A stretch of DNA of 64,000 bases, taken from contig CBFFRQ010000034.1 of NCBI GenBank assembly GCA_965644315.1, positions 175,492 through 239,491 on the forward strand. The letters are read 5' to 3'. This document shows, in pieces, positions 39,933 through 64,000 of this stretch (the stretch's first letter is position 1; every line of letters begins with the position of its first letter). The position numbers and the translations under genes are program-made. The stretch is from Caecitellus pseudoparvulus (Eukaryota > Protista > Bigyra: Bicosoecida). A model generated the notes under the pieces. That model saw only the letters and a program-made list of their open reading frames with translations. It was not told the origin of the DNA and did not search any database.

Positions 39933-40766
<834 letters not shown>

Positions 40767-41189
40767 TCAAATCCCGCAAGCAGGAAAGGCGTGCGCAGGA
40801 CGTGGACGACAGGTTGGCGTTGAAGAGGCACAACTGTGTGAATGGAGTGTGTGACAGAAAATGGATCGGACCTTGGTGCTGGCAGCAACGGCTCCATGCG
40901 TGTGTGTGGGGCCAGACGGCAGGAGATAGTCTGGCGCCGAGACTTCTTCGCTCGACTTGTTGCGCTTACACAGTCAAAGGCGGCGAGGCACACTCCCGTC
41001 CTCGTGTCATTTCAACTCCCCCCCCAACATCCCATGACCCCTTTGTTTCTGTGCTCAGTCCAAGGCTCTAAATGGGGAGCATTGGCCGAGGTTTCACGCG
41101 TTTCAGTGACTCAGTTACCCGGCGGTGCAGCTACCGCAACCAGTTGAGCGAGTGTCTTGCGAGACCAGAGTTGGCAGCAGGTCAGCGCG

Positions 41190-47100: not shown

Positions 47101-47108
47101 ACCAGTAG
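41190..47108 (+). CDS. CCCH zinc finger + DEAH/RHA-helicase-like + RBR (RING1-IBR-RING2) fusion protein, ~1,970 aa, with degenerate catalytic motifs
   Basis: CFRFARGKCERGAACEYAH (CCCH). Helicase motifs VIVCQP (Ia), LIIDKVHERT (II, E->K), VVLMSATL (III), DVIVFVP (IV), VIDTG, QRAGRVGRT (VI). C-terminal CPACM..GCGHRMCALC..C..WGC, CPHC..CPNCTKCFCPIC..HEVLTC, CPSC..CSCGVKYCNRC..VYNHL. The architecture resembles plant DEAH11/DEAH12. Confidence 0.85.
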   Translation: MASPLREDVASDDSFGEVGPGQADGRSTMDVDHEAVCFQRGCTCFREHQERCPPDFHGYCFRFARGKCERGAACEYAHFTCPRTGCPCLRRHTTSGQPSAFPPAPPREARSAVELPTQKANYEELLRAVTAERNRKFADKLPQREMAALLRDLKQDLGTLSALVSGAEAHGVRLSRRDATLLKAFMRCAKDRFSPRLPERYELLPAVLQILARPVSLVTSANGSEASSQIPLALLKALGAPETEGDSTVTLPPERVRRGLVIVCQPTELAAKMSQELTLAEWKRGSDAATETVDEHPSIVYIDSGSTVPPPGARVVFCSARTLLLWVLRVNQAGVGGSGTSRIPPEVGVLIIDKVHERTVEIDLVLAVARRHVAGGGTSGCSRVVLMSATLDADELSAYFQEGIPGQAAVSAGDTMEVSFMEVMLRHHHIQDMYVEDKHAPTTHGLEPRTVRRVQELLQNAQLHSSLRFKNKPGDVIVFVPNDAYVERVGAALRRASLDAAQDPGATGTVLVEVLELTSDVAAGTRGHVLDQLMGQRGTEQHICRVIVTTSAFEKSFTFPHAMAVIDTGLTEAVTVDPLSGLHIRRTQPVSQAAAIQRAGRVGRTNKGVVMRMYSEAAFHALPPYITPGVLTASLDKLVLSMISLGIQEAELPCAPSALGLDKARETLLRLGMVEHYRGNLAISTVGFQVLKWGISSPAAAIVVKALGVTPEQPSRTSMPHFIAQAAVVAAIVATGAKLVADPDKLLQHGGFTSAAGPSVLDGGDLHWQRAAFLFALARLGRGEAELLHAIGVREAVLYTVLAKVQAIARGLREWGSEQSIAAAGILEATAAAAPGPPGAATGGSLSIRLGDREATCLQRCIVGAFEQNMALASSVPQAGYHCCSLNMRLLPAESVSTVHFGAEPRQHVVYSHIVSDAAGRVALRGITPVPRSMQPRGAHQAACMETTIDRAVLNAPPHFQDCQVPLSEALVEAVSQSHELLALEAVTGAAVIPSPHLVRWGDATEAEAQVSRPLTVVSRAECHEDVVQRLNTLLSNKLRDMALASAPLQVPKRGIDLQLGPGITPSSVLCPGEFDSVIVHNVPSVLLAGGADAPAAVLHFDWYNAEHVCGLLDIAGIAATPVLHGPSERSADGMLCSGWIRFASPAIARQVRQHLQGCRPDLARLREAMARSAEAEQVSEAEEAILRTQQALPGGADAVELQVAAFPGLAAGASGQGLNAIEPQKNVLRVHWLQRSKEGSRHAAMVVMFDEAAAASLKAFIDRKPADGPFAGVTAEVDVEKNNTLNLRGLQDTWEASILTQRMQETIIEHFRDAEAGGDIPLIKYVVVHQNRRRLLLEPNLLDCYQQAGQELADLLSEQLYGEPHRVQVHAEAVSGHKQKAITTELLLPSVHTDQDPHEALQALLDGLGGAAACPANLATFHGTRKPFLQPHDPHLLQLPMAAWHALRYSAWPIVGRVLQAEARAGHAASISIGPALHAATAAAATQSTITITIQHPDVHEQDVIAKNLAASFEPVQVRPKHRTHAAGGEAVAAAGAGDAADARDAASTVWQPEWQHGPALFRAVLEHSSTLRVLGRNQAALLPVDGGRSHLLYVMRPQRQRCLASLDAHLRTFHDEANAGRKLVAFLPGISASGQEVRTALAALPGVIYRAVGRGIKLRGPLGSLAAAIKVLAKATCADDDDDWECPACMEEKAKLVAQGVDIVQMTGCGHRMCALCLAEQLLHGCEKHSRQPLQCCVWGCSSAVCAVDLVAAGAALDSTELQKRAEVQAGMHVAMHVVPPDFKGWDDVDAAVAADVPADHGGQSWMERHWTTCPHCSHSIRMESVPRSCQVPCPNCTKCFCPICVDPQVEGHEVLTCPARAKLSLAELEEIAARDGSGETGTTTCPSCGQHALCHSRQSAKIICSCGVKYCNRCRAYWHTRSLPVYNHLARNCGPDGDWWRHTNPEGWVQPDPDVPMELPKNIPPEWDQ

Positions 47109-48549: not shown

Positions 48550-48845
48550 AGGTTTTCTGCGTGCATTGAGGGAGCAGGGTACAGTCGTGGGCCTCTGGAT
48601 CCGCTCGTGTGCGGGGTTGTAGGCGTGGTGGGTGCGGCTCACGAGGTCCAAAGTGTCAAACAGCGGCTGTGCGGCACCTGGCCGTGGGGCCCCTTATCGC
48701 AAATTGCACCGTTCGAAAACCCCCACACAAGTACCTAGTACTGAAAATTCAAATCCTGTCTCGGTGCCCTGTGGCGGTGAGGTTGCAGCTGCTGCATGCG
48801 TTGTGTGTGTCCACGTTTGTGCGCGGAAATTGGAGGCAACACGCC

Positions 48846-50189
48846 ATGGCTGCACCTTCCACGAAGCTGGGCGCAGTTGAGCAGTGGGCCCGGGCTTGCG
48901 AAGCACATGATGTAGAACAGCTACTGGCTATGCTTCAGAGTGGTTTCCCTGACACCGAGGGGGATTTGGAGTCCCTTGGGTGTAGTGACACCACGGCCGC
49001 CTTCCTCGTCGCATGTCGGGCAGGCCATGTCGAACTGCTACGTGAGCTGTTGAGTCTGGCGGGCGACCAGGCAGTGGACGTGCACCAAAGTGAATGCGAA
49101 GAGTTGGAGGGTGACTTTGTCGGCTTCGACGCAGGTTGGCTGGGCGCCTTCGGGGGCGGCGAGGATCCGGTGACGAGCAGGGTGACGAGGGTGGACTCTG
49201 CAGAGGCTGGCTTCCGAAGCGCCTGCAACCTGGGCCACATTGGCGTCGTGCGTGAGCTGCTGGGCCTGTCTGGAGAGAGGGCAGTGGACGTGCATGCGGC
49301 GGACAAGGTGGGGCCTGAGGCCGCTTTCCGTGTAGCCTGTGCGAATGGGCACCTGGGCGTTGTGCGCGAGTTGCTTGCGTTGGAGGGCGCGCGAGCGGTG
49401 GATGTGCACGCGGCGGATGGGGATGGGCAGGAAGCTGCCTTCCGACTGGCCTGTGGGCATGGGCATGTCTCCGTCGTCCGTGAGCTGCTTCGTCTGGGTG
49501 GAGACCGCGCAGTGGATGTGCATGTCGGTACGGAGGATGGTTTCCAAGCTGCCGCCCGCGGTGGGCATGTGGGTGTGGTGCGGGAGCTCCTGGCGCTGAC
49601 GGGTGCGCGGGAAGTGGATGTGCACGCGCACTGGGCAGGGTCGCCAGAGGGCGCTTTCCGGCGTGCCTGTGCCAATGGACACGTTGACGTGGTGCGCACT
49701 CTGCTGGCGCTGAGCGGTGAGCGGGCTGTGGATGTGCACGCTGGTGGCGCGGCAGGGCCCGAGGCTGGTTTCAGGGCTGCATGCTCGCATGGGCATGTGG
49801 ACGTCGTTCGCATGCTGTTGGGTCTCACAGGCTCCCGCACCGTGGACGTACACGCCGAGCAGGAGTCAGCGTTTCGCACAGCGTGCCGGAATGGCCACCT
49901 GGCGGTGGTGCAGGTACTGCTAGGGCTACCTGGCCACCGCGCCGTTGATGTGCATGTGGGAGATGGCAGCAAGCCTGATTCCTGCTTTGCGTGGGCTGTG
50001 CGGAAAGGCGACACGCTCGTCATGCGCGAGCTGCTGGCACTCACGGGCGAGCGAGCCGTCACCTTGGCAGCCCGACGCGAAGCAGGGGGAGCCGTAGGCC
50101 AGGTGGCGCGGGATGCTGTGTGGTGTGGGACCAGCACCCGGCCTGCCAGGGGCATGCCAGCCCTGCTGCGAGCGGCGCTCCATCAGTGA
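48846..50189 (+). CDS. Variant ankyrin-repeat protein 2 (~9 repeats)
   Basis: Same repeat consensus as gene 1. C-terminus ARDAVWCGTSTRPARGMPALLRA is paralogous to that of gene 1. Confidence 0.85.
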   Translation: MAAPSTKLGAVEQWARACEAHDVEQLLAMLQSGFPDTEGDLESLGCSDTTAAFLVACRAGHVELLRELLSLAGDQAVDVHQSECEELEGDFVGFDAGWLGAFGGGEDPVTSRVTRVDSAEAGFRSACNLGHIGVVRELLGLSGERAVDVHAADKVGPEAAFRVACANGHLGVVRELLALEGARAVDVHAADGDGQEAAFRLACGHGHVSVVRELLRLGGDRAVDVHVGTEDGFQAAARGGHVGVVRELLALTGAREVDVHAHWAGSPEGAFRRACANGHVDVVRTLLALSGERAVDVHAGGAAGPEAGFRAACSHGHVDVVRMLLGLTGSRTVDVHAEQESAFRTACRNGHLAVVQVLLGLPGHRAVDVHVGDGSKPDSCFAWAVRKGDTLVMRELLALTGERAVTLAARREAGGAVGQVARDAVWCGTSTRPARGMPALLRAALHQ

Positions 50190-50366: not shown

Positions 50367-52067
50367 ATGGACGGGTGGGGGTGGGCAGTGGACGAGCCAG
50401 GAGAGTGGACAGCGGCACGGGAACCCGGCGGCGTCCCACAGTGGGCCGAATTGTCGCAGCCAGCTGAAGATGGCGGGCAAAAGAGCGCCGAGGGCGTTTC
50501 AACCCAGGACGAGTTTGTTTCTGCATGCAAAGACGGCTGCGTGGACCGAGTGCGCCAGTTGCTCGCCTTGACGGGCGAGCAGGCAGTGTGTCCACACAGC
50601 AATAGCAGCGAGGGGTTCAGACTGGCGTGCGAACATGGGCACTTGCCCGTGCTGCGGGAGCTGCTCGCGTTGGAGTCGGGCCGCGCCGTGGACGTGCACG
50701 CGAGAGGGCGACAAGGGCCCGAGGCTGCCTTCCGCAAAGCGTGCCAGCACGGCCACGTCGCTGTCGTGCGTGAACTGCTGGAACTGGGCGGCCCCCGTGC
50801 CGTTAACGTGCACGCTGGGGACTGGGATGGCGCAGATGCCGGGTTTCGCTTGGCATGTGCACACGGGCACGTTGAAGTGGTGCGCTTGCTGCTTCAGCTG
50901 CAGGGGGAGCGTGCAATCGACCCACGGGTGGCGGACGAGGGGGGGCCTGACGCGGCGCTGCGGACCGCCTGCGCGAGCGGCCATGTGGCAGTGGTCCGTG
51001 AGCTCTTGGGTCTGGGGCCCGACCGCACCGTGAACGTGCACGTTCGGGGAGAGACGTGCTTTCGCGCAGCCTGTGCCAACGGCCACACGGAGGTTGTCCA
51101 GGAGCTCCTAGCACTGTCTGGGCCTCGTGCAGTGGATGTGCATGCTGCAGATGAAGACGGCCCGGAGGCCGGCTTCAGACGAGCTTGCCGAGGTGGGCAC
51201 CGCGGTGTGGTGCGCCTGCTCCTGTCACTGGTTGGGTCGCGGGAAGTGGATGTCCACGCCGTGGAGGAAGCAGGCTTTCGCCAGGCATGCTACAACGGCC
51301 ATGTTGACGTCGTTCGTGATCTGCTGCACTTGTCTGGACACAGGGCCGTGGACGTGCATGTCAAGGCAGAGAGTGCTTTTCGCTGGGCTTGCTCGTACGG
51401 CCACGTGGAAGTCGTGCGGGAGTTACTGGCCCTCACGGACCATCGGAGAGTTGATGTCCATGCCAACGGCAGCGTCTGTCTTGAGTGGGCGTGCCAGGCA
51501 AACGTGGAGGTCGTGCGCCTCCTGCTCGCCTTGGAGGGGGATCGGGCCGTTGACGTGCATGCGCGAGACAGCGCAGGTCCCGAGGTCGCCTTTCGAACAG
51601 CCTGCATGTACGGCCATGCTGACATTGTGCGCGAGCTGCTCGAACTGTCTGGCTCACGCGAAGTGGACGTCCACGCACGGGATGAGCGCGGTGCAGAGGC
51701 CGGCTTCCGCAGAGCCTGTGCGAACGGCCACGTGGGCGTTGTGCGCGAACTGCTTGCGTTGGGGGGCGGTCGGGCCGTTGATGTGCACGCTGCCGATAGG
51801 CACGGGCTCGATGCGGCCTTCAGAGGCGCGTGCAGGGACGGCCATGTTGAGGTCCTCACCGAGCTGCTTGCGCTGACAGGCGCCAGAAGAGTGCCTGCGA
51901 AGGCCAGGCGGGAAGCTGGGCAAGTGGCTGTGTTTGCTGCCAAGCAGGCAGTCTGGTGTGGGAGGGGGATGGCACACGCACGGCGGTGCAATCCAGCAAT
52001 AATGCCTACAAGTAGGCATTATTGCCTTAGATATATCAACAAATATATTATATCAAATTTCTTTTAA
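50367..52067 (+). CDS. Variant ankyrin-repeat protein 3 (~13 repeats); last ~10 native codons replaced by read-through into the AT-rich island
   Basis: Same repeats. After AKQAVWCGRGMAHARR the paralogous ..LLRA ending is missing and the frame runs into AT-rich DNA (NPAIMPTSRHYCLRYINKYIISNFF*). Confidence 0.8.
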   Translation: MDGWGWAVDEPGEWTAAREPGGVPQWAELSQPAEDGGQKSAEGVSTQDEFVSACKDGCVDRVRQLLALTGEQAVCPHSNSSEGFRLACEHGHLPVLRELLALESGRAVDVHARGRQGPEAAFRKACQHGHVAVVRELLELGGPRAVNVHAGDWDGADAGFRLACAHGHVEVVRLLLQLQGERAIDPRVADEGGPDAALRTACASGHVAVVRELLGLGPDRTVNVHVRGETCFRAACANGHTEVVQELLALSGPRAVDVHAADEDGPEAGFRRACRGGHRGVVRLLLSLVGSREVDVHAVEEAGFRQACYNGHVDVVRDLLHLSGHRAVDVHVKAESAFRWACSYGHVEVVRELLALTDHRRVDVHANGSVCLEWACQANVEVVRLLLALEGDRAVDVHARDSAGPEVAFRTACMYGHADIVRELLELSGSREVDVHARDERGAEAGFRRACANGHVGVVRELLALGGGRAVDVHAADRHGLDAAFRGACRDGHVEVLTELLALTGARRVPAKARREAGQVAVFAAKQAVWCGRGMAHARRCNPAIMPTSRHYCLRYINKYIISNFF

Positions 52068-52560
52068 TATGTGCTTATCTATATCATTAAATATATATAA
52101 TTAAATATCAACGAAGTTAAAATATTATTAAAACTATCTAATAAACAATTAAGAAAAAGAAAAATATAAAATATATAATACTATCTTAATAATATCTGCG
52201 AAGCTATGATTTATACGCTTTAGCGTGTAAATCTCTAATATGATAATTTTAATTATCCTATCATTCATATCTCTAATATATCTATACTAAATCAAAACTA
52301 AATCTAAAATACAGCATTAATGTTATTTATAACAGATATCATAAAAATAAATTCTAACCGTCTCAAAAGATACAGAACAACAGAAAAAACATATATATTT
52401 TAAAAAAAAATACAAAGCTTTTATATATATAGATTTCAAAGATGTATTTTAGGTTGTAGTGTATGAATAACTTTGCGAGAATATAAATAAAAGGTGTCTT
52501 TGCGAAAATATAAAATGAACGAGCCATAAATTATATATACACAAACATTTATAAAAAAAT
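51990..52560. other. Sharply bounded AT-rich island of apparently foreign origin, containing two palindromes
   Basis: Abrupt switch from GC-rich coding DNA to very AT-rich DNA (roughly 20% GC by eye). Palindrome 51996-52025 (14-bp arms). Palindrome 52208-52233 (12-bp arms, one T/G pair). Near-direct repeat CTTTGCGA(G/A)AATATAAA at 52471 and 52498. Confidence 0.75.
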
Positions 52561-52603
52561 AGGTTTAGGTTAGGGTTAGGGTTAGGGTTAGGGTTAGGGT
52601 TAG
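52560..52603 (+). repeat. Internal telomeric tract: TAGGTTTAGG(TTAGGG)5TTAG
   Basis: Read directly. Degenerate repeats at the proximal edge become perfect repeats from 52570. Confidence 0.95.
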
Positions 52604-55517
52604 CTACTCAATGCATTGCAGATTGCCTCCATGCAGGCTACATCATGGTACAGCTTGGGCTTGGACATGTGGTGCCACCTGCGCCACAACAGAATGCAGT
52701 GACACAGACACCACGACGGCACCGCTTGCACGGCTTTGCGACTAGCACAGACTCGTGTCCGTTGTATAAGTCGCCGTCTGTCTTGGCGCTTCAGCGCCCG
52801 CCCCGGTGGGATGGTCTTGAGGTGTAGGTCCAGGTCTCGGTCCACTCTTGTCTTGTCCGTCCAGTCCAGTCTCGTCCGTCTCGGTCCGATGTCCAGGGGT
52901 GGAGACCCGACTTGCTTGGCTTGGGTGGCGGTGTGGGCTGGAGGATATGGACTCGACACGGACTGGGTGTTGCTGAGATGCAAGCACACGACCCAGCCCG
53001 GCTGTCCCTTCGGCTCAGGTTTGGGGGCGGCCTCACAGATCTTGCTGCAAGTGCCTTCCCCTTCCACTGAGCCGAGTCCTGATGTGTTGGTATCGATGTT
53101 GGGTTGGTGATGGTGAGGTTGGGTTGGACTTTCCAATGTCCGATGTCAGCTATGTGCGTCGGTCGCGACACAAAGCTTCAGTCATGTGTGGCACAGGGAG
53201 TATGCCCCCACAGGTGACTTACATCAGGCGTCCACCCATCTGCCCGATCGAGATGTGGGGCACATCCTTGACCTTGGGCAGGCGACCCTCGCCGTCTTCA
53301 GGCACCAGCCGCTTGAGGGGGTCCTTGACCTCAGCCTCCAGGGTGGCGGCCTGCTGTCGGGTCATCCGCCCATGAGGCATGGCCACCCTTGTGCCCTTGC
53401 CAGCGATGAGGGTCTGGGGGTGCACGGTGCCGTCGGTGGCCTTGTGAGGCAGGGGGGGGAAGTCATCTCGGAGAGACTGGAGTGCCCCTCGAAGCCTGTC
53501 CCGGAAGGGTGCTGGACTGCCCGCCTCGGGTGTGGTCCAGATCCGGTACAAGACGTTGATGCCTTCGGCTGCCAGCCGGGTCATGCACTTGTGCAGGGGC
53601 AGCTCGTCATGGAGGTCAGGGATGTCGGGGTTCCACAGCACCAGCTTGCCTCGATCATGGTCGACGAGGATGAGCTGCAGATGGGCCGTGTTGTCGGTCC
53701 ACACCTCTCGAAGTGCGAAGGCATACAGCACTCCGTCGAGGTGCCCCTCTTGGTCACCCTCTTCATCAACCTGGCTGGGGTCGACGCCGGCCTGGCCAAG
53801 GTCATCATGCCCGGCTGGGGCACGGTACCCTTGGTTGATGCGGTCGATGAGCAGGTGCAGGCCGGGAAGCAGGACTGGTGGTGTACCTGGGGCCAGGAAG
53901 GTGTCATCCGGCGAGTGCTGGTGCAGCATGTTGCGGAAGACGGCCACCCGTTGCCCGTCTGAGCGGAAGGGGGAGGGTGGCTTCTGGCCGACGTCCATGA
54001 TGTCCGAGCTGGACGAGTCACTGACCACCCCCTCCAGCTGCCTGACCATGTGCTTGAAGGCAAGCTGGGCAGCGTTGATGGTGGCTGCATGCTGGAGTAG
54101 GAGGAGGTCCCCAGCCTCGAAGACCCTCTCCCCTGCTGCCGTCTCGAGACAGGCCTGGACACAGGCCCGCCCCCCACGTTAGAGTACACGTGGGTCGATG
54201 ACAGCAGGTCGGCCAGAGGGCCAGGCTTGATGGGGTACTCGGCCAGGTGCTCGGGTGTCCGCACACTGTCATGAAGAGGCACCACCCTTGTGATCACCTC
54301 CCATGCTGCTGCTGCAGACGGCCGATACCGGTGCACCTCGGGGCTTGCCTCGCCCGACGGGGTGGGGGACGGCCACTTGCGGTCGACGCCCCGCTGCACC
54401 CTTGATGAAGGCAACATGGCATGCACCACAGGGGTGGTGACGGTATCTTTGGGTGAGCCTTGGGTGGCAGGTGGTGAGGTTGGTCGAGGTGCAGGTGGCC
54501 GGACGTTCTTGATGAAGACGTCCTCGAAGGTGAGGGATCGTCCGGCTGACTTGCCCTTTCCTCGCTTGCCTCGACGGGTCTTCTTCTTCTTCGGTGCCTT
54601 GTCGAGCTGAGTGTCAGTCCAGGTCGATGGTGTCTTGGTGTCGACAGGTGCATCACCCTCGGAGGGGACGGATTGTCTGACACTGGGACGGACGGCTTGG
54701 GCTGGCACGGGGCCATGGTCGAAGTGGGACCTAACGAGGCACATGACCTTGGCAACATCACCTGACTGGCAGGCGATTTCGGTTGCTTCCTTGGTCACTT
54801 GGTGGGCCACTTGGATGGCGGTGGGGTGGGCCTTCACCTTCACTTTCGCCTTCGCCGATGCGAACTGCTTGGTGTTGGTGTAGGCCACGGCGACGAACCC
54901 ACCTTGGCCGACTCGAATGGCGAAGTCGTCCTCTTGAGCAGCAAGAATGCGAAGTTGACGTGCCACTGTTGGTGAATCACCCTCACTTCCGAGCGTGACG
55001 AGGATGGTTGGCGATCCGGTGGGTCCCTGGCGCAGGGCCGCATTGGCGTTGCCGAATTCCGCACTCAGCCCTGGGATCAGCCGTTCGGCGGCTTCCCCAT
55101 AGACCTCGAGCCACATGTCCCGTGCCGAAGATGAACTATCATGATCAGTCTTGGGCAGGGGTCCTCCAAGCTCGAAGGTGCGTGCGGCACCCCGACGTGG
55201 CATGTCAGTGAAGACACCTGTTCTGGGGCCGAGCACTTGCTTGCGCTTCAGGCACCCCTCCACGAAGAGGACCCCCAGGACTTGATCCACTTGGGCGTTC
55301 ATGATGCTTGTCAATGATGCTTTTGATGTCGATCCCAGGTGCATGCCCCGACCGAGGGCGCAAACTGGGAGCCACGGTGCGATGGTGTGCGGAATTCGCA
55401 CTACCCCGCCCCGGTGCGCACCACCCAACCAGCAAGCACTGTGCAACACCACACTTGGGTGCACGAGCGCCTGGATTAGGCAATGTTAGCACTTCACAAC
55501 TTGTGATTAGCTTGACA
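52604..55517 (-). mobile_element. Element B: non-autonomous telomeric retroelement (~2.9 kb) related to element A, encoding only the ORF1-like region
   Basis: Flanked by telomeric repeats. The 5' block 55437-55491 is identical to 63216-63270. The 3' terminal ~280 nt has blocks shared with A's 3' end (CAATGCATTGCA, TACAGCTTGGGC, GTCCGTTGTAT, GCGCCCGCCC, CCACTCTTG). No APE or RT sequence. The 5' end may extend to 55528. Confidence 0.85.
53219..55302 (-). CDS. ORF1-like protein of element B (~694 aa after correcting one frameshift in the C6 run at 54170-54175)
   Basis: Colinear with the N-terminal ~740 aa of A: MNAQVDQVLGVLFV/MEAKTSQVLGALFV, GPRTGxFTDMPRRGAARTFELGG, AAxEDDF, basic KKKKTRRGKRGK, CVQACLETAAG, PPVLLPGLH, HLxLILxDHDRGxLVLWNPD. 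Adding one G to the run restores NVGGRACVQACLE. TAA at 53219-53221. Confidence 0.8.
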
Positions 55518-55528
55518 TTTGGAAAGTT

Positions 55529-55544
55529 TTAGGGTTAGGGTTAG
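55529..55544 (+). repeat. Telomeric spacer (TTAGGG)2TTAG between elements B and A
   Basis: Read directly. Confidence 0.95.
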
Positions 55545-58500
55545 TTCATTCAATGCATTGCATGTCGCCTTCACGCTTGCACGCGATACAGCTTGGGCAT
55601 CACATGTAGCGTTCGCTGCTGTGCACAAGGCACACCAGGAGCGCTACAGCGGCTCCCACTCTCGTGGGTCTGCAGCCATCACGGACATACGTCCGTTGTA
55701 TGAGCCGCCGCTTGCTAGGGCGCGCCCGCGCCCGCCCATACGTGTCGAACTGCCCCGCCCGCGCCCTCTCGGCTCAGTCGGCTGAGCCAGAGGGGGCCGG
55801 GCCCACTCTTGCTTCGTTCCAGTCCACACTTCGCTTCATAATTCAGAAACCCCCCGCTTCTCCTGGCCCTTGCCAGGCACTGCACGTGTGCCTGGGGCCA
55901 CTGCGCGCTGTCCTGAGCCGCAGTGGCCGCCTTCGGGTGGCGTTTCACGACGGTGTTGCACTGCACCACGCCGGTGGTAGCAGCGCGCACCGCCGGAACA
56001 ACGCCACCCGCGCACCAAGAACACCAAGAACACCTCCTTTTCTTCACAGATAATCCAGCTGACTCATCACTCAAGGCCCTGAGGACCTGTGCGCCCCGCC
56101 TGCGACGTTGCCCCGCGCGCCCGCGTGTTCACCCTGCCAAATTCCGCGCGCCCCGTCACAGGAATCTATCTCGGGCTGCACGTGGACCCCGAGCCATCAT
56201 GTAAGTATACTGGACATATTCACTTCATCATCTTCCAACTTTCCGCAGGTTCCGTCATTCATCAAGGACATCACATCACCCTGCTCTCGCACTTCGCTCA
56301 GCCACGACCGTGGTTGTCACCACGCCACGCCGTAAGCTTGCACCGCCTCGCGCCGCGCTCTACACACATCGCCCGCTACTCAGAGTCAGATGGACACTTC
56401 AAGGACGACCCAGAGGACGACGCCGAGGATGAAATCGACGGTGCCGGAGGTTCCTCGTGGACTTCCGGCCGTGCCAGCCCGAAGTCGAGCAAGGTGGCCT
56501 GCCTCGTGAAGGAGCGAGGCGGCCGACGAGGGGACTTGACAGGGAAGTAAGTGCGCTCGAAGCGCCGCGTCTTCACGTCCCGCACATGCTTCCTCACAGT
56601 ACTCGGATCAGGAGCCGAGTAACCTGGGAGAGGACACGTTCGTCCATGCGCCGCCCACCAGAGGTACCGGGCGTGCCTCTGGATGTGACGGTCGGCACGA
56701 GAGGTAAGGCTGAGCATGCACGTCACCACCGCGTCCCACGCAGATACCGCGAGGCCCGTGGCAGCTACCAGGGCCTCGCGCCAGTACTTGGGGGGGCGGA
56801 GTGGACCCGAGGAGCCGCGGAGAGTGACATGGGGGTTACTCAGGACCGCGGCTGCCTCGGGACTCCAGGGCTGTTGTGCCGGAGGCTGGCCCCACCGATG
56901 GGGCCACTGGCCGCACAGCAGCAGTCGCAGCAGCAGCAGGCGACACGGGCGGCCCAACAAGCGGCCTTCGTCGGCGTGGACAACAGCATCCAGCAGTGGG
57001 GGGGGTACTTCGAGGTACTGGCAGTTGGCGACCCCCTCACTGCATCATTGGATCTGGACAGGAGGTTCCGCACCTCTGACAGGGCGGACCTTCTCGCAGG
57101 GACCAGGGCGTGGTGGGGGCAGTCAAGAAGGACGTGCTCCTGCAGGCTGCACCAGGAGACGCTGTGGCACAGGGGGCAGGCGCTGAACAGTGTCGGGGTG
57201 TCATCCCCGTTGAACACTTGAAGCGTCTGCCACAGGTGCACCTTCACACGTCTCTCCTGATCGCCTTCGTGGACCCAGAAGACTGGGTTCACAGAGGAAG
57301 GGATCGGGTGCAGCCAGGCGAAGAAGCGAGCACCCACACCGATGTGGTACTCCTTCGGACGCCTGGTGGCCTTCATCTCCCCCGTGGGAGTGTAGCCAAC
57401 TGCACCGCACTTGACCGTCTGGGCCACATGAAGGAAGGAGGCGACGACGCGTTGCCGAGTGGCCCAGGGGGTGGTGTCCGGGAACTGGGGGGCAGCCGAC
57501 AGATCTGAGGACTCCGCTGCCGCGAGTCCAAGCAGCTGGATCTTGGGGGGGGCGGGGTCCATCCCAGCGGTGATGTCGACCCCGTGTGTGTCTGGGGCAG
57601 AGTCAGGCGGCGGCTCCAGGCACACAGCCTCCAGGCGTGCGCGGTCAGGGAGGCATCCAAGGAGCCAGAGGTCGAGTAGACCGTGTAAGGCCCATGGATC
57701 TGGGATGCCTCCAGCGCCTGGCCTGTCGAGGCGGACATTGGCCAGGAAGATGCTGGCCATGTCCAGGGGGGAGGGCAGCAGGTCCAGGGCTTGGCGCAGG
57801 CTGATGGACAGCGCCTTGGCCATGGGGGTGGGCACTTGGACATTCTTCAGCAGCTTCATGAAGATAATGCTGCGGAGTTTCGTCGCCCGGATGTGTGTTG
57901 GCAAGACGCCGCACACAGCAAGCTTTGCATAGTTGTGCATACGTGCTAGCGAGCTTTGCATCCCCAGCTGGGCCTTGCTGAAGGCGATGGCAAGTCCACG
58001 ATCGACGTCCCGCAAAGGTAGCACCGAGTTGCTGACCTGGGACGCCAAGATGTAGTCGGCGGCACTGTTGATGGAGGCAGTGCCGATCCGCTGCTTCAGG
58101 ATCGGACTCAGCCACGCACTACTGAGGAGGGCACCGCAGCCGAACCCAGCCCGAGTGCAGGACAGAGTGGCCTGCCTCGTGGCAAGCAGTCGGGTTCGGC
58201 TGACAGTTTCAGACAGGGGGACACCCAAGTACGAGTAGGTGCTCGTGCGTTGGATGGGTGTCCCCTTGACCTTCATGGACTGCCCTGACCTCAGCCAGCG
58301 GGACCGCCAGATGAGCTTCCGCCGCTCCGTGGCTGACACCCCATTGACCTGTTGCGCCCCGGTGAGGACCATGACCCCGGACTTGCGCGGGTTGATGGCC
58401 AAGCCCACCCGGCTGCCCAGGGCCTTGACTTCAAGGAACATCCGATGGAGGGCAGCAGGGGTGGTGGCGAGGCAAGCAAGATCGTCCGCATAGAGCGTAT

Positions 58501-61500
58501 GCGTGACGTGGCCGCGGGGTGTCGGCACTCCTGCCCCTGACACTCCCTGACTTGGCAGCTCTCTCAGGCGTTGAGAGAGCACATCAATAGCCACCTTGAA
58601 CAACAGAGGCGACAGTGCGCCACCCTGGGGGACCCCGTTGGTGACTGGGAGGGGGTCGCAAAGACCATGGCCAGTGTGAATGGCCACTGTGGCGCGCTGC
58701 ATGTAGTCCTTCACGCAGCTGAGCAGGGGCTGTGGGAGGCTTGCTGACTCGAGGATCTCGAGTATCGCTTCGTGGCTGACAGTGTCAAAGGCACTCTTGA
58801 AGTCCACGAAAAGGACAAGGACACTGGCAGTGGGCTTGGCGCGCAGGTGGGCAGTGGACACCTCCTGCAAGGCCAGGATCTGCTCGTGGGTGTTGCGGGC
58901 ATGGGTGAAGCCTGCCTGCTCATGTGAGATCCAGTGCTGCACCCAGTCTTCGACACATGAGGCCACGACCGAGAAGAAGAGCTTGGCTTGGGGGGGACGG
59001 CAGACAATGAGCCTGTATGTCTGCACCCTCCCGGCCTGGCTGGCGGTCTTGGGGATGAGTGTCCCCACCCCACTGTGGTACTGACTTGGACATGAACCGG
59101 TGCTGATGGCCTGTTGAAGAGCGGCAGCGTACCTCTTCCGGAAGTCCTCGCTGGCATACTTGACATGCTCAGCCTGGTAGTGCCCTGTGCCAGGGTTGCG
59201 GTGGAGGCTCAGGGACTGGATCTTCTTCAGGATATGGTCCACGCTCGGGGTCCAGGCGGCTTCAGTCGACATGTGGGTCGGGGCCGATGGGAGCAGCCGG
59301 CCCAGTCCGAACTTCAGGGACACGACTTGCCGTGGAGGGGGGCTGATGATCTGGGCCATCTGGTCCCTGACCACAGCCCGCACTTGTGATGGGTCTGTGA
59401 TGAGGGTGCCGCTGTCGTCCATGACTGACTGGATGGACGACGAAGTGCCCTTCCTCCTTCTGCCGGACAGCTTCCGCACATGCAGGTGAGCAGTGAAGGG
59501 GTCAAGCCGGGCAAGGTCCCGGATGCGCTGCTGGACTTGGAACATGGCGGCCTTGTGTTTCTTGGCAACCAGCCGAGTACACTTGCGCATCGCCTTCTTC
59601 CTTTCAACATGGGTGGCAGCAAGGTCCTCCATGAGCATGTGCTTTCGTTCATCCGCACAACGTAGGTCAGCTGGGGCATGGGGTGACTGGCTATGCTGAA
59701 GAAGGTGCCGGCGTCGATGAAGCTTGCGGAGTTGCTTCTTGATCCGCCCTGTCCTCACTGTCATCCGCTTCTTGACAGAGCTGAGGGTGCGAATGTCGGC
59801 AAGGGCCTGAAGCAGCGGGGGTGCCACAACTTTGCACTTGGCATGGGCTTGTCGGGCAGCGTCGGCAACCAAATCATCCAGGCCTGACAGCAGGGTGTCT
59901 GCAGCTTGGCCGGGTGGGGGGGATGCGGCACCAGTGATGGATGAGTCAAGCAGCCGCCTGTGCAAGGTCTGTGCCCTGCGCCCTTCACGTGTAGATGATG
60001 CCCACCATGGCGGCACAGAGAAGGAAGAGTGGGCATGCCGGGCACCCTTTGGCCGTGGAGGGATCACAACTTGGACTGTTGCTGACAGGAGGTAGTGGTC
60101 ACTCAGGATCGACTTCTCCGGATTCTGCTTGCCTGCACTGGAGAAGGTTGTCGTCACTGTGTGTGGCACCTTGACCTGGGCCTTGAGCAGTGGGCAGACA
60201 AGGATGTGGTCCAGGGCTCTGCCGTTCGTGGCATGGGTGGAGCACCCGGCGAGCCCGGCTGGCTCGAGGTTACCATGCTCGCACACGATTGCGAGCTCCT
60301 TGACATCTGGGATGGGGTCAGCGACATCGGTCCGGTTCTGCCAGCATGTTGCGTCCCAAGCAGGAAGTCCGCCATCACCAGGATGGCAGTTGAGGTCCCC
60401 CATGAGGGAGATCATATGCGTGGTTCGCAGACTTTTTACAGCGTTGGCCAGCTGCTCCCAGACCTCTTGGCGGTGGGGCAGCTTAGTGTCTGGGTCTGCA
60501 AGTGGCTTCTTCCGCTGGGCCGTGTGCCAGTTGGGCACGTAGGCCGCGATAACAGCAAGGGGCCTTGGCTTCATGGGGATGGAGCAGGCGACCACACAGC
60601 GCCCATCGAGTCCAAGGTTGACTATCTGCGTGGCGCGTAGACGACGGTCGACCAGAAGCGCAACTTCACTGCGACCGGGTGGACGATCTGGGGGGGAGGG
60701 CCTGAAACATTGGAGCCCCATGACTTCCGAGTCAAGTGTGCCGTGGCCACCAGGTTCCGTGAGGCAGAGGACCAGTCTGGATGAACGGAGGCACACAGAC
60801 TGGGCGCAGATGAGAACCTTGTGCAGGTTGCGGCCACACGACCCAGCAACATTCCATGACACGAGCGACACTGGGATGCTGCTGGACTTTCCCACTGGTG
60901 TGTACGGACTCTGCTCCCACCTCGGGGGCATGGCATCCTCGTCTGATGGAATGAGTTGGAACAGAGGGTCGCGCTCCTTTGCCTCACTTGCTGCAGAGGC
61001 CTGTGCTCGAGTGAGCCGGCCTGCTTGAATGGTGACCCTGGTAGACTTCCCCGCGATGAACGTCTTGAGGTGGACAGCCCCCTCGTGGTCCACAAAGGGA
61101 AGGGGAGGGAAGGACTGGCGCAGACTGTGGAATATGTCTCGGATCCTGTCACAAAGAGGGACTGGGTTCCCGGTGTGGGGGGTTGCCGACACTCTGTACA
61201 CCATGTCCACTGCGTCATCGTAGAGTCTCTGCATACACTTGTGCATGGGCAGCTCAGTGCATGCATCAGGTGTGTCTGGGTTCCATAGGACAAGGACTCC
61301 ACGGTCATGGTCAGCCAGTATGAGAGTCAGGTGGGCAGCGTGGACTTGTTGGGGCCGGTGGAGAGCAAAGGCGAAGTGGACGCCATGGAAGTACCGCTCT
61401 TGCTCGTCCTCGTCCACAACCGCTTGTGGACTCACACCGCCATGGTGCTTGTTCCCGCCATGCAGGTCTTCATGCCCAACATTGATACGGTTCAGCAGCA

Positions 61501-63296
61501 TGTGGAGACCTGGCAGAAGCACTGGGGGAGACGTGGGCTGCAGCAGCGAGTCATCCGGAGTGAACCGGTACAGCAGTCGGGCCAATGCTGCTAGCTGGTC
61601 CTCGGGATCCGAAGAGGCCACGCCTCTAGTCGGCGCCAGGCACTGGACATCCGAGCTGGACGAGTCAGACAGGGCTGCAGCCTCTCGCTTGCGCAGGGTT
61701 TTGAATGCGCGTTGCGCTGCTTCCACTGTGGCTGCGTGTTGGAGGAGGAGAAGATCCTCGGGCTCCAGCACCTGAGCACCCGCTGCAGTTTCCAGACATG
61801 CTTGCACACAGTGGCGCTCGGAAAGGTTGCCAGCTACTGTGCTTGATGCAAGGAGGCGTTCCAGCGGGGACCCAGTTGGGATTCTGTGTCTTGGGAGATC
61901 CGCTGGGAGCCTGCTGCAGTCTTCCATCCGAACGACTTCAACGATTCCTGGGGAGGGTGGTGATGAGTCTGGCATGTCCAACGTGTCGCATGCCTGCGGT
62001 TCAGACTTGACACTTGGCTTGTCTGCACCAACAAACAAAGTCCTGGCCGTTTCAGTGCTGGGTGCCTGAGCGGGTTGGGCTGCTGACTGGGCATGGTGTT
62101 GTTGCTTTGAGTCTTGCTCAGCAGTTGGCGGTTGGTCCCATCGCGTGCTAGCCCCAGTGCGCACCCGAGAGGATGGAAGGACAACCTCCGTCGTGGGTCG
62201 CGGTGAAGTGGTGGGGGCAGGCATCACTGTACGGAAGGGGCGTCGGCTTGCTGAGGGCTCGGACGGGGGAGTCTTGAAGAGGTCAGCGAACGTTCGTCCT
62301 GGCACGACATTGGATGGCTTCGAAGACTTCGAGCGCTGTCCTCGGCGTACCTTCTTGCGCTTGCCTGGCACATGATGAGCAGTGTGGGCAGGCTTGGGTG
62401 GAGCAGGCCGGTTCACTTTGTCGACAGCGGCGTCGCCCTTGACGGGGACGGAATGTCGGACGAAGTGGCGGTCTTGACGAGCAGGCGGCGAGTGGCCATG
62501 AAGATGGGACTTGACGAGCTTCACGACTGAGCTTACGTCACCTGTCTCAACAGCAATCTTCGTGGCTTGGGGCATCAGGAGGTGGGCCGCCTTGAGCACT
62601 GGGGCCGAGGCAGTCACCTGCACCTTGGCCTTGGCGTTGGCGAACTGGCGTGTGTCTGGAAACACCACAGCCATGAAGCCACCTCGTCCAAGGCGCACAG
62701 TGAAGTCGTCCTCACGTGCTGCTGCTTCGCGTATGCTCCGTGCCAGCTCTGCGCTGGCACTTCCTCCGCCAAGCGAGACTAGCAGGGCAGCTGGGGTTCC
62801 TTGTGGGCGGCGCAACGCCGCTGCACCACGCCCAACTTCCGCACAGATGCCAGGGAACTGGGCCTCCGCCGCCTCACCAAAGACTTGAAGCCAGGAATCT
62901 CGGATTGTTGATGAAGATGTTGAAGGGTCTTCGTCGATGGGCACTCCGCCAAGCTCAAACGTTCGTGCAGCGCCTCGGCGCGGCATGTCAGTAAATCCGC
63001 CCGTTCTTGGTCCACGCATTGCTCGCGCAGCAATGCACTTATCCACGAAGAGCGCACCCAGTACTTGACTTGTCTTGGCTTCCATGGTGATGATGGAACG
63101 TGATGCAGGTATCCACAGGTGCAGACTCCCGCGGGGAGTGCACACTGCTTGCGCTGGTGTGATGGCGTGCGGAATTCGCACAGCTGCCACCCGCGCGCTG
63201 CACTGCCAACCCAAACACTGTGCAACACCACACTTGGGTGCACGAGCGCCTGGATTAGGCAATGTTAGCAATGCACAACCTATGATTAGGTTGACA
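55545..63296 (-). mobile_element. Element A: full-length telomere-inserted non-LTR retrotransposon (APE-type LINE, ~7.75 kb, no poly(A) tail)
   Basis: Bounded by TTAGGG repeats on both sides. Contains APE, RT and CCHC domains. Both termini are homologous to those of element B. Confidence 0.92.
56376..63085 (-). CDS. Single polyprotein of element A: ORF1-like region + APE endonuclease + reverse transcriptase + CCHC knuckle + C-terminal domain (~2,240 aa with one frameshift near 57000-57040; as assembled it stops at 56840)
   Basis: APE (~60080-60875): SWNVAG, LCLTEP, AYVPN, MGDLNCH, LDHILV, SDHYLL. RT (~58220-59200): YRLI, EQAGF, FVDFKSAFDTVSH, GVPQGGALSPLLF, LYADDL (58481-58492), GLAINPRKS, YSYLGV. 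CPLCHSVSWCSLQEHVLLDC (~57119-57178). ATG 63085 aligns with the start of B. Confidence 0.9.
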
Positions 63297-64000
63297 TTAG
63301 GGTTAGGGTTAGGGTTAGGGTTAGGGTTAGGGTTAGGGTTAGGGTTAGGGTTAGGGTTAGGGTTAGGGTTAGGGTTAGGGTTAGGGTTAGGGTTAGGGTT
63401 AGGGTTAGGGTTAGGGTTAGGGTTAGGGTTAGGGTTAGGGTTAGGGTTAGGGTTAGGGTTAGGGTTAGGGTTAGGGTTAGGGTTAGGGTTAGGGTTAGGG
63501 TTAGGGTTAGGGTTAGGGTTAGGGTTAGGGTTAGGGTTAGGGTTAGGGTTAGGGTTAGGGTTAGGGTTAGGGTTAGGGTTAGGGTTAGGGTTAGGGTTAG
63601 GGTTAGGGTTAGGGTTAGGGTTAGGGTTAGGGTTAGGGTTAGGGTTAGGGTTAGGGTTAGGGTTAGGGTTAGGGTTAGGGTTAGGGTTAGGGTTAGGGTT
63701 AGGGTTAGGGTTAGGGTTAGGGTTAGGGTTAGGGTTAGGGTTAGGGTTAGGGTTAGGGTTAGGGTTAGGGTTAGGGTTAGGGTTAGGGTTAGGGTTAGGG
63801 TTAGGGTTAGGGTTAGGGTTAGGGTTAGGGTTAGGGTTAGGGTTAGGGTTAGGGTTAGGGTTAGGGTTAGGGTTAGGGTTAGGGTTAGGGTTAGGGTTAG
63901 GGTTAGGGTTAGGGTTAGGGTTAGGGTTAGGGTTAGGGTTAGGGTTAGGGTTAGGGTTAGGGTTAGGGTTAGGGTTAGGGTTAGGGTTAGGGTTAGGGTT
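63297..64000 (+). repeat. Terminal telomere (TTAGGG)n, ~117 perfect units to the window end
   Basis: Read directly. The G-rich strand runs 5'->3' towards the end, as expected for a right-hand chromosome terminus. Confidence 0.99.

Follow-up and report, generated by a model that had tools for sequence, protein, structure and literature searches.

Only a handful of lineages are known to harbour telomere-specific retrotransposons, namely insects, one lizard, Giardia, Chlorella, two fungi and rotifers. In Drosophila, HeT-A, TART and TAHRE (HTT; Jockey clade) form head-to-tail terminal arrays with the 3' ends facing the centromere. The commonest of these elements encodes only an ORF1-type protein and needs a foreign reverse transcriptase (RT), several lineages coexist, and attachment to the chromosome end has little or no sequence requirement (PMC4700185). 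MoTeR1 and MoTeR2 of Magnaporthe/Pyricularia oryzae and the FoTeRs of Fusarium reside inside TTAGGG repeats of telomerase-positive hosts, in one orientation and in homogeneous or mixed head-to-tail arrays with half to more than 20 repeats between the elements; the RT-less MoTeR partner has both termini, 5' and 3', in common with the autonomous element, and 5'-truncated copies occur (PMC7367193, PMC12857005). TRAS/SART from Bombyx and other insects (R1 clade) and Tx1-1_ACar from Anolis are telomere-repeat-specific LINEs with an APE-type endonuclease, found in a fixed orientation and junction register in genomes that possess telomerase and several such lineages each (PMC10088271, PMC7265360). 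Terminal addition, finally, has been described both for the endonuclease-deficient Penelope-like elements Athena/Coprina, where the 3' end of the RNA is paired with or primed by the G-strand end (PMC8557442), and for endonuclease-independent L1 at dysfunctional telomeres (Morrish et al. 2007, as summarized in PMC4700185).

Leaving the clades aside, the features listed for Drosophila, the fungi, the insects and Anolis recur at the chromosome ends of Caecitellus pseudoparvulus described here, where the need for a foreign RT is presumed, the likeness to Athena/Coprina and L1 concerning the mode of addition that we propose. The window (the whole stretch of DNA analyzed, 64,000 nt) contains two elements, A and B. 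We consider it probable, at roughly 80%, that they belong to a diversified group of LINEs which is confined to chromosome ends and adds new copies there by priming from a G-strand 3'-OH, with B borrowing its RT and the host retaining telomerase. The analysis thus supports the telomeric retrotransposon system proposed in a preliminary description of the locus.

Layout of the contig end and anatomy of element A

The window forms the right-hand end of contig C34, where the observed arrangement of A, B and telomere tracts was confirmed:

52560-52603, plus strand: interstitial telomere tract, slightly imperfect, 44 nt (Tandem Repeats Finder, period 6, 7.5 copies, 92% matches)
52604-55526, minus strand: element B, full-length copy of an RT-less, ORF1-only telomeric family, 2923 nt
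55527-55544, plus strand: spacer TTTTAGGGTTAGGGTTAG, 18 nt, joining the B 5' end and the A 3' end
55545-63296, minus strand: element A, autonomous telomeric APE-type LINE, 7752 nt
63297-64000, plus strand: terminal telomere tract, TTAGGG x117.3 (Tandem Repeats Finder, 100% matches)

The terminal tract, (TTAGGG)117, runs with its G-strand 5' to 3' towards the contig end, and the short tract at 52560-52603 sits between an AT-rich island and the 3' end of B. Both elements lie on the minus strand under this right-end TTAGGG and have their 3' ends facing the centromere, as the preliminary description had noted; its order of telomere, B, telomere, A and 704 nt of telomere also held, but the spacer measures 18 nt and not 16. 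Element A is composed as follows, all parts being on the minus strand:

63086-63296, minus strand: 5' UTR, 211 nt, starting 9 nt inside the canonical 5' end of the group
60887-63085, minus strand: ORF1-like region, continuous in frame with the APE domain; the entire B protein is its homologue
60887-61942, minus strand: domain with a probable papain-like fold, the C-terminal half of the ORF1-like region
60095-60859, minus strand: APE-type endonuclease domain (Pfam Exo_endo_phos, 29.4 bits against a cut-off of 24.5)
58217-59056, minus strand: reverse transcriptase domain (Pfam RVT_1, E 2.6e-31)
57119-57178, minus strand: CCHC motif CPLCHSVSWCSLQEHVLLDC downstream of the RT, kept in all aligned lineages
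56376-57036, minus strand: conserved C-terminal region of ~215 aa, in another frame in the window copy
55545-56375, minus strand: 3' UTR, 831 nt, including the shared terminal module

The window copy contains a 2143-aa open frame (56840-63271) with an ATG at 63085, and the usual 5' end of the group that it misses by 9 nt is CTTTCCAAA. The endonuclease match covers aa 805-1059 of the frame, N-terminal to the RT (aa 1406-1685), which among solved structures is closest to human LINE-1 ORF2p (E about 2e-21), followed by R2; a sequence search of the APE domain against solved structures gave no significant match. The catalytic-type endonuclease motifs SWN, (T/S)EPGG, Y(V/I)P, GD(L/F)N.H, LD(H/Y)IL and SDH are invariant in all eight lineages, which argues that nicking is used and hence that end-priming may not be the sole route of addition. 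The ~215-aa tail, into which the frame continues in other natural copies, is conserved in L011, L005, L021, L007 and L015 and ends at 56376-56378. Within the C-run at 57032-57036, the short-read contigs of three runs (X1, X5 and X6) have one C more, inserted behind 57031. Of the single frame originally assigned to A, all four parts (ORF1-like, APE, RT and CCHC) were recovered, but the final ~64 aa are out of frame in the window copy.

A block of ~170 nt in the 3' UTR (about 55650-55830) is almost identical to the A2 lineage. The plus strand of the 3' part of A contains five GT..AG intron-like intervals that are conserved across lineages, three of the five falling in the 3' UTR. An antisense spliced gene at 56548-56600 and 56705-56744 was rejected, as both intervals lie inside the conserved sense-strand coding tail, and no antisense frame of the A 3' part displayed coding-type substitution.

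Element B and its orphan protein

Element B begins with CTTTCCAAATGTC, ends with GCAATGCATTGAGTAGCTAA and comprises:

55303-55526, minus strand: 5' UTR, 224 nt, common to A and the best-conserved part of B between strains
53219-55302, minus strand: coding region, a single 694-aa ORF in copies with seven G, split here
52604-53218, minus strand: 3' UTR, 615 nt, the last ~150 nt being the shared 3' module

In the window copy the ORF is broken at a run of six G (54170-54175). At least 30 other B copies, about half of those assembled, have seven G and a single 694-aa ORF, and in X1, X5 and X6 the one short-read contig of each run likewise contains the extra base. A homopolymer error is therefore the simpler reading, and a programmed -1 frameshift at the G_GGG_GGC heptamer was rejected on the same evidence; the frameshifts in the window copies of both A and B are probably homopolymer errors.

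All 694 aa of the B protein align colinearly with aa 63-795 of A (43% identity), and the protein ends 10 aa short of the APE domain in this alignment. B has neither APE nor RT and thus encodes the ORF1-like portion only, as first described. Lacking an RT, B would have to borrow one from an autonomous lineage. Its protein is ~41-43% identical to each autonomous lineage sampled, which rules out that B arose by recent deletion from a sampled master; as B is equally far from every lineage, an element other than A could be the RT donor.

The B family includes at least 52 full-length copies of ~100% identity in addition to 5'-truncated ones. It occupies at least 43 contig ends and is the most abundant component of chromosome ends. 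Compared to a metagenome copy (L054), which has telomere repeats on its flanks and then an A-type 5' end, B showed a dN/dS of 0.165, with divergences of 0.45% in the 5' UTR and 2.9-3.3% in the ORF and 3' UTR; compared to X5/X6, 19 synonymous and 3 non-synonymous differences were found. B accordingly evolves under purifying selection, and the expectation that it forms a family of its own and is not a single neutral copy proved correct.

The ORF1-like region that A and B have in common was compared to sequence and structure databases. Pfam yielded no match, whether to gag, to zinc-knuckle families or to any other, and a profile searched against 1.84 billion representatives retrieved no homologue, just a 48-aa fragment. 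Foldseek retrieved no PDB match with an E of 0.001 or lower. For a model of the C-terminal domain (pLDDT 78.5, pTM 0.80), almost every one of the top 50 chains among the structural matches was papain-like (C39, Josephin, staphopain, calpain, UfSP and PLpro), the best Z of 7.0 falling inside the stated background of 7-8, and the language-model neighbours were Peptidase_C58/C39 at a low score of 0.76. Across 10 sequences, C381, H541 and N558 (B numbering) are invariant and N375 nearly so. The model places C381 at the start of a helix (44-53), H541 in a strand (202-211) and N558 just after a strand (216-220), in line with the papain-type pattern of a Cys at a helix start, His and Asn on successive strands, and an Asn six residues before the Cys. 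Taken together, the C-terminal half of the region probably adopts a papain-like peptidase fold. Being an orphan with this probable fold, the ORF1-like part is not gag-like, contrary to what its original label implied. The model suggests a putative protease that could process the polyprotein itself or act on host telomere proteins, and a fused orphan region of this kind would represent an unreported type of LINE accessory protein.

Distribution, junctions and shared ends

The system turned out to be larger than the two components first described, comprising at least eight autonomous lineages (30-76% amino acid identity), A being one of them, as well as B. None of the ~100 RT matches or the 57 B matches is further than about 21 kb from a contig end, a zone which amounts to roughly 30% of the assembly as many contigs are short; the pattern hence draws its strength from polarity and telomere flanks and not from distance alone. 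About 99 of the 100 RT matches have the 5' end distal, as do all 57 B matches, every one at a contig end and in one polarity, a pattern far beyond chance. Copies of A type are thus telomere-flanked at ends in one polarity, as predicted, and not dispersed at internal sites. The LINE-type RT, the N-terminal APE endonuclease and the variable 5' truncation with a common 3' end place the group among the LINEs, and its confinement to ends in a fixed orientation among the telomere-specific ones, the exceptions being a short internal relic in the wrong orientation (C23) and an internal 3' fragment (C208). The nearest database proteins outside the group are 31% (P0002) and then about 25% identical.

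Element A has two more full-length copies of ~100% identity (C135 and C148) and one of 94% (C105), and its 5'-truncated copies at contig ends are many. Truncation points in B were found at nt 243, 525, 1025, 1182, 2422, 2479, 2755, 2795, 2822, 2887 and 2899, with intact 3' ends, and fragments of 25-37 nt from the 3' end were found inside telomere repeats. In the 20 ends sampled, the terminal tract measures 0.6-1.9 kb, and beneath it B, A and other lineages are stacked with telomere tracts of 4 to ~900 nt between the elements. Joints of the B-telomere-B type are present in two independent runs, and a 54%-identical autonomous relative in another metagenome has CCCTAA repeats on both flanks; with B-telomere-A joints likewise found in independent metagenome data, the B-spacer-A junction, for which the preliminary description had considered misassembly, appears real. 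The RNA-library evidence is limited to seven short metatranscriptome contigs, none more than 99% alike (three at 95-99% and four at 90-95%), which could be DNA carry-over or derive from a relative. The search for TERT that had been proposed was positive, with a Telomerase_RBD match of 79 bits in a 1389-aa open frame (C77).

At the DNA level, A and B are 74% identical over the first ~350 nt (A nt 1-352) and also share the last ~50 nt, so that B does keep the terminal signals of A at both ends. The shared 3' module consists of stem-loops, the palindrome CAATGCATTG and a terminal CTAA, and in a consensus fold of nine lineages including B, 94.8% of cells are paired and 7 pairs show compensatory change. 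Every copy terminates in ...CAATGCATTG(N5-9)CTAA without an A-run, and thus has no poly(A) or simple-repeat tail. Tail-less 3' ends are known in some site-specific LINEs, and the missing tail therefore does not bar LINE membership. The 3' junction is invariably ...CTAA followed by C(CCTAA)n, even next to non-telomeric DNA.

Proposed end addition, alternatives and known systems

The autonomous elements encode one long protein with, in this order, an orphan N-terminal region, a putative papain-like-fold domain, APE, RT, CCHC and the conserved C-terminal tail. We propose that the element RNA, which would carry no poly(A), pairs with the G-strand through its end (N5-9)CTAA behind the palindrome, in register with the C-strand repeat. 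Priming would then occur from a G-strand 3'-OH, offered either by an adjoining APE nick or, where an end is short or denuded, by its natural overhang, and the new copy would land distal to older ones with its 3' end centromere-ward. Telomerase would re-cap the new 5' end, and repeats of this cycle would give rise to head-to-tail arrays with short TTAGGG tracts in between. B, which has lost APE, RT, CCHC and tail but still possesses the 5' UTR, the structured 3' end and the ORF1-like protein, would be mobilized in trans. Such additions may contribute to end maintenance and could benefit the host.

A purely parasitic insertion of TRAS/SART type, where APE nicks TTAGGG at a fixed position, copies insert within existing telomere tracts and end maintenance is left to telomerase with no contribution from the elements, would also agree with the invariant APE motifs of eight lineages, the fixed 3' junction register, the presence of TERT and the long terminal TTAGGG tract capping each array, and has a precedent in SART1, which depends on a defined repeat number and is nicked in at a fixed site (PMC7265360). 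We nevertheless regard it as rather unlikely, since random insertion sites in tracts of 0.6-1.9 kb predict long proximal tracts, whereas the telomere-like DNA proximal to the elements has a median of 16.5 nt over 42 3' junctions and is at most 60 nt in 35 of the 42. Many elements moreover border on non-telomeric DNA or on the preceding element with nothing but CTAA in between. Interstitial tracts could have shrunk secondarily, and the short-tract argument is for this reason not decisive.

According to a second alternative, A and B are now essentially subtelomeric repeats that recombination between ends, through gene conversion or break-induced replication, has spread and homogenized, as for yeast Y' or MoTeR, with retrotransposition rare or extinct. 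More than 50 B copies are ~100% identical, the same B-CTAA-B junction is found on several contigs, and three A copies have a common 9-nt 5' shortening; identical junctions and copies would also be expected from break-induced replication between ends, which is documented for the growth of MoTeR arrays (PMC7367193), and 5'-truncated copies can also come from terminal erosion followed by telomerase healing (PMC7367193). However, the many distinct truncation points and spacer lengths, the three A copies in three contexts with differing spacers, the intact ORFs under purifying selection in B and several autonomous lineages, and the very short 3'-end fragments within telomere repeats make recombination improbable as the whole explanation. 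It very probably acts as well, and is compatible with retrotransposition. An assembly artefact, with repeats collapsed or mis-joined at contig ends, is highly improbable: the assembly does consist of 215 contigs, many of them short and telomeric, it contains homopolymer errors, and the whole 6-kb stretch is spanned by no contig of the runs examined, but dozens of contigs repeat the same order, polarity and junction types while differing in their spacers, and independent metagenome contigs show telomere-B-telomere-A, telomere-element-telomere and B-telomere-B.

Addition of copies at chromosome ends by a telomere-confined LINE group thus remains the preferred reading. Its boldest form, that an RT-less element with a protease-fold ORF1 is the main DNA of essentially every end and is added directly onto short or denuded ends via several autonomous LINE lineages, is doubtful. 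If true, it would amount to a working backup end-healing system convergent with Drosophila HeT-A/TART, and would show the telomerase-plus-retrotransposon intermediate that is usually only postulated.

The preliminary description knew of no APE-LINE/ORF1-only pair described in a TTAGGG protist. A literature search found no prior description of these elements, but fungal MoTeR1 and MoTeR2 already share both termini within TTAGGG (PMC7367193). MoTeR1 is CRE/SLACS-like with a restriction-enzyme-like endonuclease, whereas the endonuclease here is of APE type and N-terminal to the RT; the unique part of MoTeR2 has no obvious function, whereas B encodes a selected 694-aa protein, and lineage diversity is far greater here. 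TRAS/SART and Tx1-1_ACar carry two ORFs, the first of them gag-like, and accurate initiation in SART1 depends on a poly(A) tail; an ORF1-only partner is not mentioned in PMC10088271 or PMC7265360, and compared to TRAS/SART the proximal telomere tracts are mostly very short here. In Athena/Coprina and the L1 case the endonuclease is absent or unused, whereas APE is conserved in the present group and its RT is LINE-type and not Penelope-type. Relative to Drosophila HTT, telomerase is present and TTAGGG tracts separate and cap the elements, the autonomous members have one fused ORF instead of two, there is no poly(A) tail, and a gag-like ORF1 with zinc knuckles and major homology region was not found. 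In the literature found, an ORF1-only, helper-dependent partner under selection is known only from telomerase-less Drosophila. A HeT-A/TART-like division of labour is now seen in a marine protist that keeps telomerase and has many lineages, and its small genome allows testing whether the elements help to heal or lengthen ends or exploit a safe niche, and how an RT-less element outcompetes its helpers.

Layout of the chromosome end and element A

The right edge of the window is the right end of contig C34. The following features were found from that end inward, with the 5' ends of both A and B pointing to the chromosome end:

63297-64000: terminal tract of 117 perfect TTAGGG units; the G-strand reads 5'->3' out to the contig end, the arrangement of a genuine chromosome terminus
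55545-63296, minus: element A, an autonomous LINE
aa 805-1059 of A, minus: APE-type endonuclease
aa 1406-1685 of A, minus: reverse transcriptase (RT)
57119-57178: CCHC motif of A
18 nt between A and B: spacer, TTTTAGGGTTAGGGTTAG
52604-55526, minus: element B, the RT-less partner
52560-52603: imperfect telomere tract of 44 nt, inward of B
51985-52559: island of 575 bp with ~15-20% GC, inward of the 44-nt tract
Inward of the AT-rich island: ankyrin-repeat-like coding region in normal 62% GC DNA

The minus strand of A holds an open frame of 2143 aa with its ATG at 63085. Among solved structures the best relatives of the RT were human LINE-1 ORF2p (E ~2e-21) and R2 proteins, and the first 733 residues after the ATG had no match in Pfam. 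Relative to contigs of three sequencing runs, the window is one C short in the run at 57032-57036, and the final ~64 residues of its frame are artefactual. A conserved tail of ~215 aa is read through in other natural copies (contigs C105 and C148) and in other lineages; in the window this tail lies in a different frame, which stays open until the stop at 56376-56378 and leaves a 3' UTR of 831 nt. Further copies of A in the genome comprise two full-length ones of ~100% identity, one of 94% and about a dozen that are 5'-truncated.

Both untranslated regions of A have additional features. No stop interrupts the frame across the 5' UTR (63086-63296) between the telomere repeats and the ORF. A ~170-nt block of the 3' UTR (55650-55830) is nearly identical in the A2 lineage, whereas the coding regions are only ~75% identical; part of the block is recognisable in B (52762-52810), and it may act in cis as an RNA signal or serve as an antisense promoter. 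The plus strand of the 3' UTR contains three GT..AG intron-like intervals antisense to the LINE (56089-56161, 56204-56249 and 56332-56384), whose boundaries are kept across A, A2 and L021, a metagenome relative, while their interiors diverge. Exactly 56089-56161 is skipped in one RNA-library contig. The intervals may belong to a spliced antisense transcript, for which no coding signal was found.

The AT-rich island, flanked by the ankyrin-like gene on one side and the inner telomere tract on the other, starts with a 30-nt hairpin-forming palindrome. A 99% copy adjoins the terminal telomere on C143 (1367-1939), and related places in genome assembly G000 are C96:26612-27262 and 48743-49393, C68:1-2000, C88:242600-243833 and C208:~39000-42000, those on C68, C88 and C208 neighbouring truncated LINE copies. 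The island may be another end-associated element, the remnant of a virus or DNA of a centromere-like kind. One uninterrupted frame of 11,832 aa (3760-39258, plus strand) takes up over half of the window, with a 1983-aa frame downstream (41157-47108).

The partner B and the ORF1-like protein

In DNA sequence, the 2923-nt element B resembles A in its opening ~350 nt (74%) and again in its final ~50 nt. Its coding region in the window is split by a run of six G residues (G6; 54170-54175). G6 versus G7 is the sole common length difference among 24 aligned B copies (11 G6, 12 G7), and G7 copies encode one ORF of 694 aa; a genome-wide protein search found at least 30 intact copies and at least 22 G6 copies. 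As contigs of all three DNA runs compared with the window have the extra G, the G6 run is most simply read as a homopolymer error of the assembly. Otherwise identical copies lose ORFs through one-base homopolymer differences at 54170-54175, at 57032-57036 and in L005/L006 near 'QMAQIISP', and short-read contigs have the longer run at both window sites; apparent frameshifts elsewhere in the genome thus need caution.

Over its full length the 694-aa protein can be aligned with residues 63-795 of A (43% identity, E 8e-163); it stops ten residues short of the endonuclease domain, so that the preliminary description of B as the ORF1-like portion of A with both untranslated ends was borne out. Identity to the ORF1-like part of each autonomous lineage is ~41-43%, and B is an old lineage with no close master among the lineages sampled. 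A complete B on the metagenome contig L054 has a 694-aa ORF 97% identical to that of the genome (dN 0.013, dS 0.079, dN/dS 0.165), and 19 of the 22 listed coding differences in two other runs are synonymous. With these values and 57 genomic matches, B is neither single-copy nor evolving neutrally. The 5' UTRs of B in L054 and the genome differ at 1 of 224 positions, against ~3% elsewhere. This common 5' UTR (63086-63296 in A, 55303-55526 in B, L054:38-262) is the slowest-evolving part of B between strains and may function as a promoter inside the element or as some other signal under constraint.

The ORF1-like protein is composed of an N-terminal domain of ~200 aa, a basic, proline-rich linker containing KKKKTRRGKRGKGK, and a C-terminal domain of ~320 aa. 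A profile of ten sequences retrieved no relative among 1.84 billion representatives except a 48-aa fragment. The whole protein was modelled poorly (pLDDT 55), but the C-terminal domain alone reached pLDDT 78.5 and pTM 0.80. Compared with 48,161 solved chains, the top 50 matches of this model consisted nearly entirely of papain-like cysteine peptidases (C39 peptidases, Josephins, staphopain, calpain, UfSP, ZUFSP and coronavirus PLpro), the best Z of 7.0 lying within the tool's stated background; language-model neighbours were Peptidase_C58/C39 at low score. Cys381, His541 and Asn558 (B numbering) are invariant and Asn375, six residues before the cysteine, nearly so. In the model Cys381 starts a helix, His541 and Asn558 lie on or just after successive strands, and the four residues are positioned where a papain-like active site would be. 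The domain probably has a papain-like fold, and its protease activity is putative. Speculatively, a protease that sits after the N-terminal part and before APE-RT could free an ORF1-type product from the A polyprotein, and B would provide such a product in excess.

Distribution, junctions and mode of spread

At least 45 of the B matches are full length with ~100% identity, and the remainder are 5'-truncated at many points (nt 243, 525, 1025, 1182, 2422, 2755, 2822 and 2899). The RT domain of A gave ~100 matches of 34-100% identity. Every plus-strand RT or B match lies within ~21 kb of a contig start and all but one minus-strand match within ~21 kb of a contig end; as many contigs are short, this distance is weak evidence alone, and the weight is carried by telomere flanks and by polarity relative to the end, constant in ~99 of 100 RT and all 57 B matches. 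Two internal copies are exceptions: C23 holds a relic of 164 aa and C208 a 3' fragment of 267 nt. Twenty sampled ends have terminal tracts of 0.6-1.9 kb, then stacks of B, A and other elements spaced by telomere tracts of 4 to ~900 nt. Translated searches of these ends revealed at least eight autonomous lineages with 30-76% aa identity to A, several of which keep frames of 2000-2250 aa intact.

A second, distant LINE group (RT 34-37% identity, open frames up to 3394 aa) shares this polarity and likewise lies no more than ~20 kb from contig ends (C147:54626-55678, C42:707725-708780, C134:16359-17411, C136, C171, C151:19795-20847, C138:3422-4441; Logan contig L022), and had no match to the ORF1-like region. 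Its relative P0002 (3724 aa), a database protein, is encoded on a contig beginning with CCCTAA repeats.

Misassembly of the B-spacer-A junctions was not borne out. The metagenome scaffold L021 consists of one complete autonomous relative (54% aa identity) that has the same termini and is flanked on either side by CCCTAA repeats; on L054, telomere repeats precede B, which is followed by 14 nt of repeat and an A-type 5' end; and contigs of two other runs join B 5' and 3' ends via 8 or 26 nt of repeat. The layout thus does not stem from an error of a single assembly. In the source-organism run, word depth is ~6x higher over B than over the 3' half of A, in agreement with the copy counts.

Full-length elements begin at CTTTCCAAATGTCAA, preceded by CCCTAA, often with 1-4 extra A residues; three ~100%-identical A copies begin 9 nt further in. 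In all lineages the 3' end reads ...(G)CAATGCATTG, then 5-9 variable bases, then CTAA, with no poly(A). The bases that follow are C(CCTAA)n, a junction kept even with few bases before unique DNA or the next 5' end, and CTAA alone separates several B-B tandems. The 3' tail closest to that of B belongs to an A2-type lineage, not to A. The last 150 nt of nine lineages, including B, share a set of stem-loops (94.8% of cells paired, 7 pairs with compensatory change); none of 500 shuffles matched the observed pairing or covariation, and slid controls were 21-57% paired. These stem-loops, retained by B, are a plausible recognition signal for the RT.

The polarity implies that the first cDNA strand extends the G-strand. 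The RNA 3' end would pair with the G-strand, which fits the fixed register and the terminal CTAA continuing the C-strand repeat, and reverse transcription would start either at a nick close to the boundary or by priming on an overhang. Telomere-like DNA proximal to the element has a median of 16.5 nt at 42 3' junctions and is at most 60 nt at 35 of them, versus terminal tracts of 0.6-1.9 kb. These short tracts and the junctions directly on unique DNA speak for healing, in which copies are added to short or denuded ends, more than for insertion at random sites within long tracts. The very short 3'-end fragments located inside telomere repeats are consistent with reverse transcription that was aborted. 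The genome encodes telomerase, which presumably adds the repeats capping each new 5' end. Recombination between ends, as demonstrated for MoTeR arrays, very probably also spreads and homogenises copies, and 5' truncation can arise from erosion and healing (PMC7367193). Pure end-priming without nicking is opposed by the APE catalytic-type motifs, invariant in eight lineages, so that nicking is probably used. As B has no RT of its own and a LINE-type copy spectrum, the only economical explanation is that it uses the RT of another element. Genome and metagenome data bear out the preliminary observation, apart from minor corrections, and support its interpretation as to structure, distribution, selection on B and coexistence with telomerase; trans-mobilisation and the function of the system we infer.

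Comparison with known telomeric elements

Telomeric LINEs surveyed in 2023 comprise SART/TRAS (R1 clade), GilM/GilT and MoTeR1 (CRE), Zepp (L1-like), Tx1-1_ACar, the Drosophila HTT elements (Jockey) and Athena (Penelope-like) (PMC10088271); in 2025 the FoTeRs joined them (PMC12857005). The literature covered, which took in few subscription-journal papers, yielded no account of elements of this kind from a protist. The A/B system resembles HTT in polarity, arrays and an ORF1-only majority element (PMC4700185), but telomerase and repeats are present and the ORF1-like region is not gag-like in the HeT-A sense. With MoTeR1/MoTeR2 it shares an RT-less partner, common termini, TTAGGG telomeres and a telomerase-positive cell (PMC7367193), whereas its endonuclease is APE rather than REL and its partner is coding and under selection. 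Like TRAS/SART it is APE-type and repeat-register-specific (PMC7265360), yet it has a single fused ORF and lacks poly(A). From each of HTT, MoTeR and TRAS/SART the system departs in some defining features. While the kind itself is already known, what is new is a group of telomere-only APE-LINEs that is diversified, has an ORF1-only partner under selection and carries an accessory protein of an unreported type.
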